A stretch of DNA of 37,311 bases, taken from sequence record NC_048037.1, one strand, 5' to 3'. Below, in pieces: positions 2,843-28,521 of this stretch. Made by a program: the position numbers and the translations under genes. Numbering within the stretch: the first letter of the stretch is position 1; each line of letters opens with the position of its first letter. The notes under the pieces are model-generated. The model ran no database searches. It saw only the letters and a program-made list of their open reading frames with translations, and was not told the origin of the DNA.

Positions 2843-3256
2843 TCATGAAATTATTATGTAGTCATTGAATAAAGGTAAATTTTTATTGTTATTTAACAGT
2901 GCCGTTCTTATATTTTCCGGTAGTTGGTCTAAAGGCGTAACAGGTTCTTGTTTATCGAATAACCGATATTTCGTTATTGTCACATAATCTCCATTTTCAT
3001 TTATTTTTATTAGTTCTACATCAATGTAAACATTTCCTGTGTTTGTTCTGTAAGCATCGTATACTATGTATTGTTTGTTTGTTTTTAATGTATATATTCT
3101 TGCACCGTGATGTCCTGTGGATGATGTAAATAGCTGACTATCTACTATTTTACCGCTATCAAAATCTATTACAATAGTATCCTTTAATCCTCTTCCTTCT
3201 CTTGTTCTTTTGTACTCGGATTTAAGTGTTACTGTTATGCTTCGTATTTCACACAT
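2843..3256 (-). CDS. Hypothetical beta-rich protein (137 aa)
   Basis: Start overlaps stop of upstream gene; protein-like composition. Confidence 0.8.
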   Translation of the reverse strand: MCEIRSITVTLKSEYKRTREGRGLKDTIVIDFDSGKIVDSQLFTSSTGHHGARIYTLKTNKQYIVYDAYRTNTGNVYIDVELIKINENGDYVTITKYRLFDKQEPVTPLDQLPENIRTALLNNNKNLPLFNDYIIIS

Positions 3257-3572
3257 CTTTATCCCCGCATGTGATTTCTATTTTCCTTAGCTCTATTAAA
3301 AATGATCCATTTAACCTTTTTAATTTGTCTCTTACCTTTTCCGGTATTTCTATACCGTATCCATATATTGGCTGATATACTGTAGCTTCTATGTTTTGAT
3401 TTGTTTCGTTTATGGTTATATCTATAAATGTATCGGCGTATATTTCTTTTGTTATTTTTATTTTGCCTTTCTTGGATAACGATTTTTTTTCTTTTTCTTG
3501 TAATTCTTCTATTGTTTTGGCTATTTCCTCCGGGTCTGAGATATAACTTACTTTTTTTAATTGGGTTGACAT
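3249..3572 (-). CDS. Hypothetical protein (~107 aa, start MSTQLKK)
   Basis: ATG at 3572 preceded by GGGG SD-like sequence; the track start at 3623 looks over-extended. Confidence 0.7.
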   Translation of the reverse strand: MSTQLKKVSYISDPEEIAKTIEELQEKEKKSLSKKGKIKITKEIYADTFIDITINETNQNIEATVYQPIYGYGIEIPEKVRDKLKRLNGSFLIELRKIEITCGDKDV

Positions 3573-3751
3573 TTTCCCCGTATATACGCTTTTCATTAAA
3601 ACCGAATAAAAATATTTTCGCAAATAATACTATTATAATATTTGCTTGAGTTTTTTCGTTTGATGATCATTTATATATTGTAAAGGATTTGGATTAATGT
3701 TGTATTATATGAAATAACATTTAAATTGTGTTTTATATTAAGCGTTTAAAC

Positions 3752-12113: not shown

Positions 12114-12383
12114 TTATAGTCCTCCTAATAGTCTTCTGAATACTCCACCTAAGCCTCTGAATACGCCTATTCTTCCGAACGCTCCCAGCACTAAGGCTAT
12201 TACTACTCCTATTACAGCCACAACTCCGAACAGTTGACCTAATGGGTTAGCGAAGCTACTTAAAACGTTTGCAAGGCTTTGTACGGCATATGCTATAAAG
12301 CTTATGAAGCTTGTTAACAATGATGTTAGGGCATTTGTTAAGGTCGTTATAGCTGAACTTATGCTACTCACGATCTCTAACAC
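12114..12383 (-). CDS. Small hydrophobic/amphipathic protein (89 aa), probable virion envelope protein
   Basis: S/T/L-rich amphipathic helix, hydrophobic stretch LFGVVAVIGVVIALVLGAF, basic tail. Confidence 0.75.
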   Translation of the reverse strand: MLEIVSSISSAITTLTNALTSLLTSFISFIAYAVQSLANVLSSFANPLGQLFGVVAVIGVVIALVLGAFGRIGVFRGLGGVFRRLLGGL

Positions 12384-12483
12384 CTCTTATGTATACATCT
12401 TGTGTATTTTCGTATAAAAGTAGTAAATGGTGGGTTTCGGTAAACCGGTGGGTATTTATATTTGTGCGGGATAGATTTACATT

Positions 12484-13029
12484 GTGGAGAACGAATGGCT
12501 AGCCCAACTAAAACAGGCGATGAGCAAGGAGATCAAAGCGATAAAGAAAAGAGGAGTGGACGTACAAGTAATACAAAACCCGGGGGAGTTGAAAGTAGTG
12601 ATAGACCTCAAGACGTTGATAAAGAAAATGAGGGAGGAAGCGAAACAAGAGCTAATGAAACAATTCAAACTAACCCCGTTCCAAGTGACGTTCAGGACAG
12701 TGAACAACGTGGAACTAGCGATGAGCCAAATAACGGGAGTGATGACGGAGGAGGACAAGATGAAACTGATAGCGTTGGAAAAACAATATCAAGATATGTT
12801 CCAATGGAATTACAACGACAAAAAACACCAGCTAAAAGTAGCAATAGTATTGAACAAGTTTTACGAGAAAGAATTGAACGAGATAATCCAGAGAATCAAC
12901 CAGAACTTAGCGGAAGCCCTAGCACTGATGAGAGTGCAAGGGGTGGACATGCTGGACTACGAGATCAAAGTGGACAAGAACCTGGTGGTAAGAGTCTTTA
13001 CAACATCCCAAGTTTCCAACAATTCCTGA
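12484..13029 (+). CDS. Hypothetical protein (181 aa), overlaps the 297-aa ORF over nearly its whole length
   Basis: GTG about 25 nt after TTTATATT (leaderless position); globular composition. Confidence 0.8.
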   Translation: MENEWLAQLKQAMSKEIKAIKKRGVDVQVIQNPGELKVVIDLKTLIKKMREEAKQELMKQFKLTPFQVTFRTVNNVELAMSQITGVMTEEDKMKLIALEKQYQDMFQWNYNDKKHQLKVAIVLNKFYEKELNEIIQRINQNLAEALALMRVQGVDMLDYEIKVDKNLVVRVFTTSQVSNNS

Positions 13030-13388
13030 ATAGAAAAGTTACAGGGTACACTCCCGGTAACCTAAATAAGAACGAGATTATCGCGTTATTCCGAAGCCTA
13101 CCTCTTGAGGTAAGATTAGAGGAGAGCGTGAGGACACTTAACGAGTTTCGAGGTATCGAGAAACGGTGGAAGAGTGTGATAGATGGTTTAGCACTTACGA
13201 GTGACAAGTATAAGGAGGCTGTAAGTAGGAAGCCCATTAGTACTAGATTGGTTGAACGTATTGTTGACGCGTTTGAGGGATATCTATCAAAGGCTATGGC
13301 GGGTGGGATAAGCGTCCAGGAAAGGGATAGGCTGAAACAAACGATATCAGAAGTCCTAATGGAGGAGGAAAATGAAGGACAGTCGTGA
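12495..13388 (+). CDS. Overprinted protein (~297 aa): disordered acidic N-terminal half plus helical C-terminal domain
   Basis: ATG at 12495; frame stays open through the whole 181-aa gene; unique helical part at 13030-13388 has no start codon near its beginning. Confidence 0.7.
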   Translation: MASPTKTGDEQGDQSDKEKRSGRTSNTKPGGVESSDRPQDVDKENEGGSETRANETIQTNPVPSDVQDSEQRGTSDEPNNGSDDGGGQDETDSVGKTISRYVPMELQRQKTPAKSSNSIEQVLRERIERDNPENQPELSGSPSTDESARGGHAGLRDQSGQEPGGKSLYNIPSFQQFLNRKVTGYTPGNLNKNEIIALFRSLPLEVRLEESVRTLNEFRGIEKRWKSVIDGLALTSDKYKEAVSRKPISTRLVERIVDAFEGYLSKAMAGGISVQERDRLKQTISEVLMEEENEGQS

Positions 13389-13638
13389 AAGTATAATATT
13401 TAAGGTATCAATACAAGATAGGCTCGAACTTGATGAACTCGTGAGGAGGCTTGGTTTTCCATCACGTCACGCTTTTTTTCTGGATATTGTAAGAGGTACG
13501 TTGACTGCAGTAGATAATCAAGATAGGGGTAGCTTATTCGTATATATCCCGGTACCCAGAACATTAATGCAAAAGTATTTTGAAAAAAATGAATCGCTTC
13601 AAGAAATAGTCGTAAAACTCATTTTATCACTTACTTGA
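13372..13638 (+). CDS. Ribbon-helix-helix protein, probably tandem RHH (88 aa)
   Basis: SIIFKVSIQDRLELDELVRRLGFPSRHAFFLDIV, then VYIPVPRTLMQKYF..SLQEIVVKLI. Confidence 0.7.
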   Translation: MKDSRESIIFKVSIQDRLELDELVRRLGFPSRHAFFLDIVRGTLTAVDNQDRGSLFVYIPVPRTLMQKYFEKNESLQEIVVKLILSLT

Positions 13639-14043
13639 TTGCATGTTGAATATTATATAGTTCGTTGTAGTACTCTTCAAACTGTCTATATAGTCCATAA
13701 ACTCATCTAACATTGCTTCATCCAGTCCTCTTAACCAGTATTTATGCCTTAAGGCAATCTTTAACCTCTTTATCACTTCACCGCTTTGTTTCGTATTTAA
13801 CACTTTAACGTATTCATTTGCTAACTGTCTGTAGAGTATCCTTAGGTTCCCCCCGACACCGTGAGCGTTAAGCCAAGGTATTAACGCTTGGTTTACTACA
13901 CTGTAGAAGTTCATTATGTTCTGTGCTTGTACTACCATGTCTTTCGTGGCGTTCTTATATGCGGTTTGTTCTGTCTTAGCTTTTACACTATACTTGGTAA
14001 TCGCGTCTTCGGTTGTTATACCGGTTCTTCTGGAGGGCATCAC
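13627..14043 (-). CDS. Major capsid protein 2 (SIRV fold)
   Basis: LNAHGVGGNLRILYRQLA matches the rudivirus/lipothrixvirus MCP pattern (L..yGI.G..RaIY); basic N-terminus; coupled to MCP1. Confidence 0.9.
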   Translation of the reverse strand: MMPSRRTGITTEDAITKYSVKAKTEQTAYKNATKDMVVQAQNIMNFYSVVNQALIPWLNAHGVGGNLRILYRQLANEYVKVLNTKQSGEVIKRLKIALRHKYWLRGLDEAMLDEFMDYIDSLKSTTTNYIIFNMQSSK

Positions 14044-14639
14044 GCACCACCCTTAACACCGATTATTTCCTCAGGTGATTTAGCTTGTAGAACTTCCTGG
14101 ATTGGAGCCGAGAAGCCTGTTGGCGAACTTATAGGTACTGGAGGTAATGGTGATCTAGGCGTTACAAGACACGCTCCTTCACGTTCTTCAGCCTCAAAAG
14201 GCTCTACTCCAACCCAAACTGCGAATATACTATTTATTAATGACACAGCTTCCTCACAGCTAACTCTTGTACCGTATAAGTTTTCGGTTAACGTCATAGT
14301 AGCCGTCCCTGCTACGTTGATCGCAATCTCATTTGCTCCTAACTTCTCGTTACTATACTTTAACCATGATGTGAAAATCTTCATTAAAGCTAACTTAATC
14401 TCATTTACATATGGTAAGTCTTGCGGAGAGGCTCCGCTCTTGATTGCCTCATCTATTACGTTTGCGAGATATTGTTTGAACTCGTTCTCAACCATGTGTA
14501 GTGACTTGAAACCGTTCTCAAAATTCGCTATCCTATACTTCGCTGATTCATCGTAGGCGTCACCCATAGTTTGTAATTTTCGTACATAGTTTAGGTACAT
14601 TCGCAGTGGGTCATTTTTTGATGTTCTTTTTCTAGCCAT
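14040..14639 (-). CDS. Major capsid protein 1 (199 aa, start MARKRTSK)
   Basis: Basic N-terminal arm, helical body, Pro-rich tail; paired-MCP arrangement typical of lipothrixviruses; matches my recollection of an SFV1 capsid protein. Confidence 0.85.
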   Translation of the reverse strand: MARKRTSKNDPLRMYLNYVRKLQTMGDAYDESAKYRIANFENGFKSLHMVENEFKQYLANVIDEAIKSGASPQDLPYVNEIKLALMKIFTSWLKYSNEKLGANEIAINVAGTATMTLTENLYGTRVSCEEAVSLINSIFAVWVGVEPFEAEEREGACLVTPRSPLPPVPISSPTGFSAPIQEVLQAKSPEEIIGVKGGA

Positions 14640-25897: not shown

Positions 25898-26777
25898 TAA
25901 AATGCCCGTTACTACCGATTTCATCAATTTAGCAGAACAACTTACACTTAACGGATATAAGAGTACATCCGCATACGTACAAGGTCTCCAAGTCCAAAGC
26001 ACGTTTTACATAGTCCTATTAAATAACGGGAACGTGGTAGCACAACTCCCCGTTTCACAATTCAAGTATAACGAAATAAGCCAAAACGAGCAAGCACTTA
26101 TCTACACTGCAATTGACAGCAGTTCAAACACGTATACGTTCAACGAGGTACAATTATGGGCTGGTAACCAATACATTATAACAGATGATATACTACAGCA
26201 GAGCGTCACGAAAAACCCGGGAATTTCCGTAACCGTAAACGTGGCAATAGAACTTTCAATAGAGACTAATACTTATCAAGGAACGATCAACATAACACGT
26301 ATAACACCCGTAGGACCTGTGAAAACACCGATCCCGGCATACTCATTCTGGTTATACGTATCGGGTAACTGTCACGCCATATCCACACCCATCTTCATAG
26401 TAAATTACATCATCCTCACGTTACTTATACCAACGTCATTCTATAATAATATACAAAACACGTTGTTCATGCAAACGTATAACCAACTAAACGTCCCCAT
26501 AAACGAGTTTAACGGAATCTCACTAATTGCCGTAGCGTTACCTTCAGCGATTATAAATATCGCAAATAGGCTAATCCCGCAAAGCGTGTCTTATCAATGT
26601 ACGACCTTACCACCTAATACACCGTTTAAACCTTCCACGACATATTCCTCAACTCTTGTAGGAGCATTCATGGACATGGGAGGAATTAAAGTACAAGTAA
26701 TAACAATACTCAATAAGCAACTACTCGCCACAACAAACTATTACATATTTCAAATAGTGGTGATACAAAATGAGTAA
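25890..26777 (+). CDS. Virion-end beta-sandwich protein, paralog family (295 aa)
   Basis: VLLNNGNVV, YTFNEVQLW, SVTKNP; clear paralog of 24908-25897. Confidence 0.8.
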   Translation: MSDKMPVTTDFINLAEQLTLNGYKSTSAYVQGLQVQSTFYIVLLNNGNVVAQLPVSQFKYNEISQNEQALIYTAIDSSSNTYTFNEVQLWAGNQYIITDDILQQSVTKNPGISVTVNVAIELSIETNTYQGTINITRITPVGPVKTPIPAYSFWLYVSGNCHAISTPIFIVNYIILTLLIPTSFYNNIQNTLFMQTYNQLNVPINEFNGISLIAVALPSAIINIANRLIPQSVSYQCTTLPPNTPFKPSTTYSSTLVGAFMDMGGIKVQVITILNKQLLATTNYYIFQIVVIQNE

Positions 26778-28521
26778 CCCACTAATAGATATCGAGAAAT
26801 TATTTACCGGCATTTTCAGACCCGTCACTAACGTACTTAGCGGAGGCATTAACACAGTAGCGTCAATTCCTCATGATATCGAAAATTTCGGGAACTCGGT
26901 TGTGAAGACATTTAACACACTAGTACGATATCTCGCACAAATACCAAGTGATATATTCAACTTTCTATCACAAATTCCCGGTGCGATCCTCACCGGGTTA
27001 CACATGTTCGGTTCATGGATACTCTCAGGGTTCCAAACTTTAGGTTCCCACATATTGGGAGCGTTAAAAATAGCGTTCTCACCACTGGTTGACGCCATAC
27101 ATTACATAGCATCCCATATACCCGACCTAATAAACTTCTTCGCTTCAATCTACACCGACCTAAGAAACATTATAAACACGATACATAACAACCTTGTAAA
27201 TATCTTCACAACAGCGTTCAGACTCGTACAAGACGCGATTGAAATCGTGTTCGGCTTCCTAAACGTGGCTCCTCAGATATTCAGAGCATTTAGTATATTT
27301 GTACAAGATGCAATAAATTTCGTAACAACACAAGCTACAACACTAGTATCATCCGCATCACAAATGTACAAACACTTTACGGACTCAGTACCCTTTGACA
27401 TCTTAAAACAAGAATCATCAAAATTCGGCAAAGCTACGGCAAGACTGATCGGGTTTAACACTGCAATGGAAATAATGAAAAGTACAATAAGAAGGAGTTG
27501 GCTATCACAAAACATATCACCCTTAACAAGGGCGTTAATGTTAGCGTTCAGCCCTGTGGTAGCGGGTATCAGCGGGATGTTTGCGGAAACAATGATACAA
27601 GCGTTCTACCCGGATATCACATCAACCACAATAAAGAGGTATACGCCACCAACCACGTCCACGACACTATTCCCGTACCATACAACTCATGTAGAACCAC
27701 CATCGTTCGCGTCAAAGAGTTACATAACAACACTGTCACAATTAACACCACCACCGGCTCCTCCATTGTTACCGCAATTCAAACCGGGTCACATAATAAG
27801 CATATACATCGAAGACGTCATAACACTAAACCAGTTCGTAGTAACCGGTGGTCTGGTATCAGCATCACAGTACGCACAAATAATATCTGACACACTGAAC
27901 TTACAGTACAATTTAGTGGTAAGACTGACACCCGTAGTTTTAATAACCGCCACAGACTTACTAAGTCCCTTACTGTCATCATCCATTACCACAGCAGTCT
28001 CACAAAACGTGAACACGATCACAGTAAACGCTTTCGCAGAAGTAGGACAACTTGCAGTACCCCTAGGCTCATCTGTGTGTACCACATTAATCGCTCCGGC
28101 TTCATACGTTTACGGTGAAAACACGGTAGATTACTTAAATGTAGCATACAACTTATGTATAAACATAAACCAGGCAATACTTGACTTCATTAACTTCTAC
28201 ATCACAACACAACCACCACCCGGTAATGTACCCACTACTACTGTAAACATCTTCATCACAACACAACCACCACCCGGTAACGTACCTACAACTGTAGTAA
28301 ACATTACGGGTACTACAATATTACCTCCTCCTAATATACCAACCACCATATTCAGTATAACAATAACACCCGGATTACCACAATTCACGGGACATACTAC
28401 TCTTGCGTTCACAACTCAAAACGTGACAACCAGAATCGGAGGGACTGCTACAACAATAGTTATAAATTACACGCCAACTATAACAATATGCCTACAAGGG
28501 GATGGATGTTATTCAGCGTGA
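26770..28521 (+). CDS. Large structural protein (583 aa): 11-residue amphipathic repeats plus Thr/Pro-rich C-terminal repeats
   Basis: Consecutive 11-mer blocks in the N-terminal part; TTQPPPGNVPTT repeats. Confidence 0.85.
   Translation: MSNPLIDIEKLFTGIFRPVTNVLSGGINTVASIPHDIENFGNSVVKTFNTLVRYLAQIPSDIFNFLSQIPGAILTGLHMFGSWILSGFQTLGSHILGALKIAFSPLVDAIHYIASHIPDLINFFASIYTDLRNIINTIHNNLVNIFTTAFRLVQDAIEIVFGFLNVAPQIFRAFSIFVQDAINFVTTQATTLVSSASQMYKHFTDSVPFDILKQESSKFGKATARLIGFNTAMEIMKSTIRRSWLSQNISPLTRALMLAFSPVVAGISGMFAETMIQAFYPDITSTTIKRYTPPTTSTTLFPYHTTHVEPPSFASKSYITTLSQLTPPPAPPLLPQFKPGHIISIYIEDVITLNQFVVTGGLVSASQYAQIISDTLNLQYNLVVRLTPVVLITATDLLSPLLSSSITTAVSQNVNTITVNAFAEVGQLAVPLGSSVCTTLIAPASYVYGENTVDYLNVAYNLCININQAILDFINFYITTQPPPGNVPTTTVNIFITTQPPPGNVPTTVVNITGTTILPPPNIPTTIFSITITPGLPQFTGHTTLAFTTQNVTTRIGGTATTIVINYTPTITICLQGDGCYSA
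28189..28350 (+). repeat. 54-bp tandem repeat (two close copies plus one degenerate) encoding 18-aa Thr/Pro units
   Basis: CATCACAACACAACCACCACCCGGTAA identical at 28200-28226 and 28254-28280. Confidence 0.9.

Follow-up and report, generated by a model that had tools for sequence, protein, structure and literature searches.

Overprinting, in which two proteins are read in two frames from one stretch of nucleic acid, is already known from many small viruses and a few phages. In the paramyxovirus P/C pair, and for the tymovirus movement protein within the replicase gene, two starts lie close together on one mRNA, and an older, folded and constrained frame is combined with a newer, lineage-restricted and disorder-biased frame at a +2 shift (PMC8227390). 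According to a systematic review of viral overlapping genes, which nowhere mentions archaea, the newer member of an overlapping pair is generally more disordered, especially in +2 overlaps (PMC8227390). The present study concerns a locus with these features in Sulfolobus filamentous virus 1 (SFV1, MH447526; Lipothrixviridae, Alphalipothrixvirus), the complete genome of which is the window analysed here (37,311 bp). Positions 12,495–13,029 are very probably dual-coding. An open reading frame (ORF) of 181 codons, here called gene A, appears to be overprinted by gene B, which starts 11 nt further downstream in the −1 frame, stays open through the whole of A and continues into a helical C-terminal domain, Bc.

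The SFV1 pair departs from those of small viruses in several respects. The host is archaeal and the genome is a 37-kb double-stranded DNA; the new frame is not free-standing but forms an N-terminal extension of the downstream gene through the entire upstream gene; initiation is presumed to be of the leaderless archaeal type and not eukaryotic scanning; and the SFV1 pair is known from sequence alone. Among viruses of prokaryotes, phage lambda Rz/Rz1 and phiX174 provide cases like A/B of a complete ORF that lies within another in a different frame, with both genes functional. In lambda, the inner gene carries a separate ribosome-binding site far inside Rz. In SFV1, by contrast, 11 nt separate the two starts, both at the 5' end; A, the contained gene, is the older of the pair, and the two genes overlap over a much greater length (∼178 codons). 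The G/GT tail assembly chaperone is made by −1 programmed frameshifting. A/B resembles it in that the second frame is the −1 frame, the C-terminal domain has no start of its own (in SFV1) and the locus lies in a structural and assembly gene cluster. It differs in that no slippery heptamer is conserved, the −1 frame is kept open and is under selection beginning at codon 5 of A and not just beyond a shift site, and a conserved canonical start opens the frame.

Two further gene pairs of filamentous viruses, AFV1 ORF221 with ORF137 and AFV9 ORF178 with ORF131, have fold and position in common with A, and ORF221 probably also resembles it at the profile level. In both viruses a helical, acidic-tailed gene of 131–137 amino acids directly follows the A-like gene. 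Unlike in SFV1, however, these genes share no more than 8–11 nt, and stop codons close the −1 frame of the A-like gene. No account of an overprinted gene in an archaeal virus emerged from a full-text literature search, and A/B seems to be the first overprinted pair with good support from such viruses.

The −1 frame of gene A is open in all relatives

GenBank contains one diverged relative of SFV1, SBFV2, with ∼65% nucleotide identity and an A protein that is 46% identical. Scoring a profile of A against 1.84 billion proteins recovered free-standing ORFs of 164–201 amino acids, the contigs of which gave four further deep lineages (L006, L007, L009 and L010); L008 is a closer relative of SBFV2. 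A later search with the A profile yielded 70 clusters, nearly all of the L010 type, and seven more distinct sequences were taken from these. The comparison set comprised 13 distinct sequences in seven deep lineages, and the L010 clade within it consists of eight sequences. Wherever the flanks were long enough, the gene order VP3, A, Bc, ORF22, VP4, VP5 was preserved. Single-protein searches of IMG/VR and of a word-indexed protein database returned SFV1 itself only, both metagenome DNA scans found no relatives, and IMG/VR contained no contigs of the L010 type.

The metagenomes also reveal a sizeable population of SFV1-like filamentous viruses, with ∼70 A clusters at 90% identity (JGI and ENA contigs L010–L025, up to 45 kb). 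These viruses encode SFV1-type VP4 and VP5 (Pfam PF25647 and PF25648), and the gene order of their capsid region is that of SFV1.

Over the span of A in SFV1, the B frame contains no stop codon and the third frame contains 36. The B frame over A is equally free of stops in SBFV2, L006, L007, L008, L009 and the eight L010-clade sequences. In every sequence it stays open as far as the end of Bc, beginning near codon 5 of A, and the third frame is interrupted by 29–36 stops. An earlier reading of this DNA from the letters only (the sequence-only reading) had proposed whole-gene overprinting and had named −1 frame stops in relatives as evidence that would speak against it; none is present in any of the 13 distinct sequences. 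When the A protein of SFV1 was held fixed and synonymous codons were redrawn from genome usage, 13.8 stops were expected in the B frame (P(0) = 2e-8), and the codon-permutation check suggested in that reading, in which A's own synonymous codons are shuffled, gave P = 0.013. Across the lineages, with SFV1 tables or pooled local tables supplying codon usage for the metagenomic contigs, 12–15 stops were expected per lineage and P(0) ranged from 4e-9 to 5e-7; within-gene permutation gave P values of 0.000–0.098 each. Synonymous sites are saturated between the deep lineages (observed over expected identical codons of 0.96–1.05 in six control genes), and the lineages are therefore close to independent observations.

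The means by which stops are avoided is evident in the choice of T-ending codons. A of SFV1 contains 7 such codons in 181, where SFV1 codon usage predicts 38, and none of its 64 codons standing before an AA, AG or GA codon ends in T; the approximate count in the sequence-only reading proved exact. The same holds in all 14 sequences (0 of ∼60 such positions each), as against 34% in other SFV1 genes. The T-ending fraction is 0.03–0.07 in A and 0.12–0.36 in neighbour genes of the same contigs. Immediately past the overlap, where the sequence-only reading had estimated 9 T-ending codons in 42, the next 42 codons contain 10, and the non-overlapped part as a whole contains 31 in 118; Bc is normal both in T-ending codons (26%) and in the number of −1 frame stops. 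The −1 frames of other SFV1 genes have 3.4–20 stops per 100 codons, apart from a single gene at 0.8. Across these genes a T-ending codon is found more often before an AA, AG or GA codon (0.34) than before any other (0.26), and the simple stop null is for this reason conservative.

These data bear on the explanation that only A and a separately started Bc are genes and that the open −1 frame is an untranslated by-product of composition or nucleic-acid constraint, for instance of a purine-rich coding strand. Metagenome gene callers do give A and a short Bc, the long frame lacks a start in the L010 clade, and two other SFV1 genes are also unusually poor in −1 frame stops. A general constraint of this type does not account for the A homologues of AFV1 and AFV9, which have a similar fold and 15–20 stops in that frame, nor for normal SFV1 genes, which enrich T before AA, AG and GA, nor for the many stops in A's third frame. 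Moreover, the frame opens exactly at a conserved start and continues in frame into Bc in 13 of 13 distinct sequences, and Bc of SFV1 would be left without any start. An untranslated by-product is accordingly most improbable.

Gene A encodes an old and folded protein

An AlphaFold2 model of A built with seven sequences reached a pLDDT of 85.3 and a pTM of 0.72 and shows four repeats of a helix plus a β-hairpin. In a Foldseek search of BFVD it matched AFV1 ORF221 (Q70LC9; E = 4.5e-8, probability 1.00, 170 aligned columns) and AFV9 ORF178 (B2CRK8; E = 2e-5), with modest TM-scores of 0.32–0.42. Profile comparison by hhalign gave a probable match between A and ORF221 (81% probability, E = 1.2e-5, 132 columns); the match to ORF178 was weak (3% probability). 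Foldseek against the PDB gave nothing significant. Scans of A, B and Bc against Pfam, PHROGs and NCBIfam found nothing above threshold, with weak recurring hints of YajQ and PHA_gran_rgn; for A the hints of a YajQ-like fold are sub-threshold and weak. The C-terminal tail of A varies in length and sequence among relatives.

ORF221 and ORF178 adjoin the two major capsid protein genes of their viruses, with the gene of 131–137 amino acids next to them. The −1 frame of ORF221 has 20 stops and that of ORF178 has 15, and T-ending codons make up 26% and 22% of the two genes, respectively. The extended frame is seen solely in SFV1-like viruses and, because the −1 frames of AFV1 and AFV9 are closed, the open second frame is a derived feature of these viruses. 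Within the comparison set, conservation by codon position follows the order second > first > third in A's frame, and this order is reversed in B's frame. The normal pattern indicates that A is the dominant, older frame. A is therefore a real, old and conserved gene and represents the ancestral frame. Its protein family is found next to the capsid genes of lipothrixvirus-like filamentous viruses and connects SFV1, a model archaeal virus of known structure, with AFV1 and AFV9.

The converse explanation, that B, the annotated gene, is the only real one and that A is open within it by chance, has the GenBank annotation on its side, and with the B protein held fixed an open A frame is less improbable (P ∼0.004) than an open B frame with A fixed. 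It is nevertheless scarcely credible, given that A is confidently folded, that its homologues are called as free-standing genes and exist in AFV1 and AFV9 without an overlap, and that its frame carries the normal codon-position pattern.

Six A proteins of the L010 type (P0017, P0020, P0025, P0027, P0036 and P0044) are labelled by JGI as 'tRNA/tmRNA/rRNA uracil-C5-methylase (TrmA/RlmC/RlmD family)'. This label looks spurious because neither Pfam nor NCBIfam backs the name.

The overlapped half of B is predicted to be disordered, and is acidic and locally constrained

The overlapped half of B had been described as disordered in the sequence-only reading, and AlphaFold2 agrees: residues 1–117 and 134–170 are predicted to be disordered (pLDDT < 50), with a short helix at residues 118–129 between them and a helical domain at residues 172–296. 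The overlapped half has a pI of 4.5 in SFV1. Foldseek of this low-confidence model gave no usable match. The disorder matches the general trend for newer members of overlapping pairs (PMC8227390). The overlapped part of B has a pI of 4.3–4.8 in all lineages, and A has a pI of ∼9.

The acidity of this segment is not a consequence of ordinary codon choice in A. In a charge null, the A protein was fixed, the B frame was forced open, and synonymous codons were drawn as typical of the genome or of the local region. For SFV1 this predicts a net charge of about +15 to +22 and the observed charge is −13. In all seven lineages the overlapped part of B has a net charge of −9 to −25 against a null of +13 to +29, and 0 of 500 resamples reached the observed value. 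Even a null that uses the codon frequencies of A itself predicts a less acidic segment than the observed one (P 0–0.19). A comparison of G- and A-ending codons for Lys, Glu and Gln was dropped since neighbouring late genes show the same bias.

Constraint on synonymous sites, which the sequence-only reading had suggested comparing in relatives, was found in A and is moderate. Synonymous-codon identity is 1.22 times the expectation between lineages and 1.28 times within the SFV1 group, compared with 0.96–1.05 in six controls. Among the L010-clade sequences, synonymous sites differ by 0.31 in A and by 0.41–0.45 in neighbouring genes. The constraint is concentrated at particular places. At the B motif SDDGGGQ, the third-position divergence of A is 0.29–0.32 as against ∼0.5–0.68 elsewhere (SFV1, SBFV2, L006 and L007), the strongest local dip in A third positions, down to the level of A's second position. 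Within the L010 clade, the third-position divergence of A is 0.15–0.20 at the B helix and 0.30–0.38 elsewhere, and the motif of this helix (residues 118–129) is conserved in all lineages. Six population variants in A of the L010 type are all synonymous in A and all alter B, but six are too few for an interpretation.

The sequences show that A is the more strongly constrained frame and that there is selection on the overlapped part of B for an open frame, for an acidic composition of low hydrophobicity and for a few short motifs, and mostly not for exact sequence. This is the profile expected of a disordered segment with few short functional motifs. A more modest role is conceivable, in which the overlapped half is translated merely as a harmless (soluble, non-aggregating) passage to Bc and has no function of its own. 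The overlap sequence of B is hardly more conserved than A's own conservation forces; among the L010-clade sequences its rate of change is 2.5 times that of A, with amino-acid differences of 0.34 (0.343) in overlapped B, 0.14 (0.138) in A and 0.23 in Bc; and SFV1 and L006 have no start for Bc alone. Most lineages, however, have an ATG at A's stop and need no read-through, yet their frame stays open; a net charge of −9 to −25 in all lineages stands against a strongly basic null; and the local synonymous constraint falls on specific B motifs. A mere passage is unlikely.

Conserved starts and a putative leaderless transcript

Both ORFs of the sequence-only reading, the 181-residue frame from a GTG and the −1 frame from an ATG 11 nt downstream of it, were confirmed, and all details of that observation hold. 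The B start at +11 from A's start is ATG in SFV1, SBFV2, L006 and L008 and TTG in L007; L009 has a B-frame ATG at +8. Any NTG codon in B's frame requires a TGN codon (Trp or Cys) in A, and the B start is therefore supplied by Trp5 of A in five lineages and by Trp4 in L009. A itself starts with GTG in the five lineages with a B start at +11 and with ATG in L009 and L010. In this small sample, the GTG pattern is consistent with a weak first start, which would leave some ribosomes for the second.

A TATA-like box, identified by pattern match, ends 21–22 nt before A's start in six of the seven lineages (SFV1, SBFV2, L006, L007, L008 and the L010 clade); no box is evident upstream of A in L009. In SFV1 its centre is ∼26 nt before the GTG at 12484, and the usual distance in Sulfolobus from the TATA centre to the transcription start site is about 26–27 nt. 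Such geometry would place the start of transcription at or next to A's start, and the A/B mRNA is probably leaderless. A scan for bacterial promoters and terminators was set aside because the virus is archaeal.

The position of the box also affects the annotated starts of B (SFV1 ORF21, TTG 12462; SBFV2 ORF31, L002 2760), which lie in or upstream of it. The TTG at 12462 sits inside the box, and the residues that the annotated ORFs place upstream of the conserved B start (ATG 12495 in SFV1, L002 2826 in SBFV2) are not conserved. The published annotation of SFV1 overlooks the conserved gene A and mis-starts ORF21, and SBFV2 shares the mis-start problem.

The C-terminal domain of B and the absence of a conserved frameshift signal

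The B frame of SFV1 contains no ATG, GTG or TTG between residue 104 (ATG 12804) and residue 212 (GTG 13128), the latter a codon of the conserved LPLEVRLEE-x-VR motif. As the sequence-only reading had noted, the helical domain of SFV1 consequently lacks a separate start. The helices of Bc occupy residues 172–296 (pLDDT 50–70 in AlphaFold2), and identity to SFV1 over this domain is 40–46% in SBFV2, L006 and L007 and 23–24% in L009 and L010.

The sequence-only reading had regarded an internal start of the C-terminal domain as evidence against B as one protein. Such a start is available in SBFV2, L007, L009 and the L010 clade; SFV1 and L006 have no ATG at the start of the Bc domain. In L009 the Bc ATG overlaps the A stop as ATGA, and in the L010 clade Bc is called as a separate gene of 106–124 amino acids. 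Translationally coupled genes are arranged in this way, with an ATG at the stop of the upstream gene, which suggests that a short, Bc-only protein is probably also made in these four groups. No sequence similarity was detectable between Bc and either AFV1 ORF137 or AFV9 ORF131, and the homology of the downstream genes is for this reason one of position only.

Between the nearly identical contigs L010 and L011, 12 of 18 differences lie within ∼80 nt at the start of Bc (nt 611–688 after A's start), a cluster that suggests a recombination patch.

Programmed −1 frameshifting or transcriptional slippage from A would yield an A–Bc fusion and leave B's ATG unused. B does lie in A's −1 frame, Bc of SFV1 has no start of its own, and the L010 clade has no canonical start in B's frame. 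The sequence-only reading had found no canonical heptamer. SFV1 has two X_XXY_YYZ heptamers at A codons 31–32, but no relative shares them. No heptamer or homopolymer run is conserved in position in any lineage pair; SBFV2, L006, L007 and L010 have no heptamer at all, and those of the remaining lineages are at differing positions, none near A's end. Frameshifting and slippage were rejected on this ground. Further, a shift near A's end would require no open, T-depleted and acidic frame over the 170–195 codons upstream, the C-terminal tail of A is variable in length and sequence, and the open frame begins precisely at a conserved canonical start. A fusion of A with Bc is thus very unlikely, and overprinting from the conserved start is the preferred explanation.

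Evidence weighed and the L010 clade

Whole-gene overprinting, as proposed in the sequence-only reading, is supported by the open frames in 13 distinct sequences, by the validation of A, and by stop avoidance, composition and synonymous constraint. Both A and B would be translated, and we infer that this occurs from one transcript.

Several observations weigh on the other side. Amino-acid identity in the B overlap is barely above the level forced by A: it exceeds the null mean in 15 of 15 pairs with z up to 3.4, and few of the 15 pairs are significant. The nulls for the metagenomic contigs depend on borrowed or pooled codon tables, as stated above. The transcription start site of A/B is deduced from promoter geometry only, and no clear Shine–Dalgarno sequence was seen before B's ATG on inspection by eye. 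In SBFV2, L007, L009 and the L010 clade, an in-frame ATG 0–6 nt from A's stop could express Bc alone. ORF21 is not among the eight virion proteins identified in published mass spectrometry of SFV1; A was missing from the search database. Finally, the first ATG, GTG or TTG in the B frame of the L010 clade is the ATG that follows A's stop, and two stop codons precede +11 at a short distance.

The L010 clade is a puzzle. In all eight sequences the B frame has no stop between +11 and the end of Bc and is T-depleted, acidic and locally constrained. The A protein of this clade contains neither Trp nor Cys. An ATT is present at +14 in 8 of 8 sequences, and in L025 a stop codon directly precedes it. 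Either the long form uses a non-canonical start in this clade, or it has lost its start recently, or it is not made, or the frame is maintained in some other way.

A more specific proposal is that a leaderless mRNA offers two starts separated by 11 nt, a weak 5' GUG for A and an AUG for B, and that the L010 frame is entered without AUG, GUG or UUG. The 5'-terminal GUG/AUG pair would set the A:B ratio, much as in eukaryotic leaky scanning, and the acidic frame of L010 would be entered, for example, at the conserved AUU at +14 or through another recoding event. This combined proposal is possible but doubtful. If it is true, the L010 entry represents a mode of archaeal initiation or recoding not yet described.

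A model for the expression and origin of the overlap

In the model favoured here, Bc would have been a separate gene just downstream of A in the ancestor. In the alphalipothrixvirus lineage, Bc would then have gained an acidic, Gly/Ser-rich, disordered N-terminal extension of ∼170 residues, encoded in the −1 frame over the full length of A. A single leaderless transcript would start at or very near A's GTG. Some ribosomes would start at this 5'-terminal GTG and produce A, and others would start at the ATG 11 nt downstream and produce B, by alternative-start or leaky initiation. In most relatives, the second in-frame ATG at A's stop would allow a short, Bc-only form as well. SFV1 would have lost this ATG, and its Bc would therefore be made only as the long protein.

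As to function, for which the sequence-only reading had considered an assembly or scaffolding role possible, B is tentatively suggested to be a non-virion assembly factor or chaperone, the acidic tail of which would engage basic partners. The candidates are VP4 (pI 9.6), VP3 (pI 11.5) and A (pI 9.1).

The direction of change at this locus is unusually clear: the outgroups have two adjacent genes, most relatives have a long form and a possible short form, and SFV1 has the long form only. The locus offers a clean natural series for the birth of a disordered segment inside an existing gene in a hyperthermophile, as well as a concrete, testable case of start-site choice on leaderless archaeal mRNAs. 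Two-start initiation, if confirmed, could set SFV1 apart from known overprinting. Because picking the longest ORF hides A and metagenome callers hide the long B, dual-coding loci of archaeal viruses are likely to be under-reported.

Annotation, neighbouring genes and other open second frames

The features of the locus are collected in Table 1. GenBank gives one gene only at this position, ORF21-308a (12462..13388), a hypothetical protein of 308 amino acids from TTG 12462, and the published description of SFV1 assigns it neither homologues nor a function. The 181-residue ORF is annotated in neither GenBank nor RefSeq. ORF21 is flanked on one side by the VP3 envelope gene (12114..12383, minus strand) and on the other by ORF22, followed by the capsid genes VP4/VP5 (13627..14639, minus strand). 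ORF22 is kept in all relatives with enough flank, shows a faint hint of a NikA-like or ribbon-helix-helix protein, and served as a control gene in the conservation comparisons.

Table 1. Features of the A/B locus of SFV1 (positions in the window)
Feature	Position	Strand	Basis
A/B promoter, TATA-like box (TATTTATATTT)	12453..12463	+	A/T-rich element, pattern match
Gene A, 181 aa, GTG start, pI 9.1, basic alpha/beta protein	12484..13029	+	ORF, profile, predicted fold
Gene B = ORF21-308a with start corrected to ATG 12495; 297 aa, pI 4.9	12495..13388	+	
Dual-coding stretch (very probable), 535 nt; B in the −1 (+2) frame of A	12495..13029	+	
A codons 4–5, GAA TGG (Glu-Trp), holding the B start ATG 12495–12497	12493..12498	+	
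B motif SDDGGGQ, B residues 82–88, over GVMTEED of A	12738..12758	+	third-position divergence dip
Short predicted helix in B (SIEQVLRERIER, residues 118–129) within the disordered region	12846..12881	+	AlphaFold2
Bc, non-overlapped helical C-terminal domain of B, residues 172–297; conserved LPLEVRLEE and SDKYKEA motifs	13008..13385	+	
ORF22, 88 aa, overlaps the end of B by 17 nt	13372..13638	+	annotation
Example peptide within B residues 1–170 (DVDKENEGGSETR)			

Two further SFV1 genes with unusually open −1 frames, at 3249–3623 (minus strand) and 26770–28521, hint that A/B may not be a single case. The first is a Lys/Glu-rich gene of 124 amino acids with 1 stop in 123 codons of the −1 frame. 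T-ending codons make up 1 of 47 codons before AA, AG or GA and 18 of 76 before others, a ratio of 0.09 against a genome median of 1.36. As in the L010 clade, its open −1 frame contains no ATG, GTG or TTG; the gene has no homologue in SBFV2.

The second gene encodes 583 amino acids and has a 144-codon open run in the −1 frame, in which a 130-residue ORF with a TTG start is nested (27498–27890). In the SBFV2 homologue, gp56 (L026 764–2611), the −1 frame is interrupted by 5 stops over 616 codons and includes a 281-codon open run, and the T-ending fraction is 0.13. The 26770–28521 gene may be a second dual-coding locus.

Long ORFs also occur in antisense orientation. An ORF of 222 amino acids (13888–14556, plus strand) is antisense to VP4/VP5 in SFV1, and one of 205 amino acids is antisense to the B gene of L007. 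Both are probably by-products of a purine-rich coding strand.

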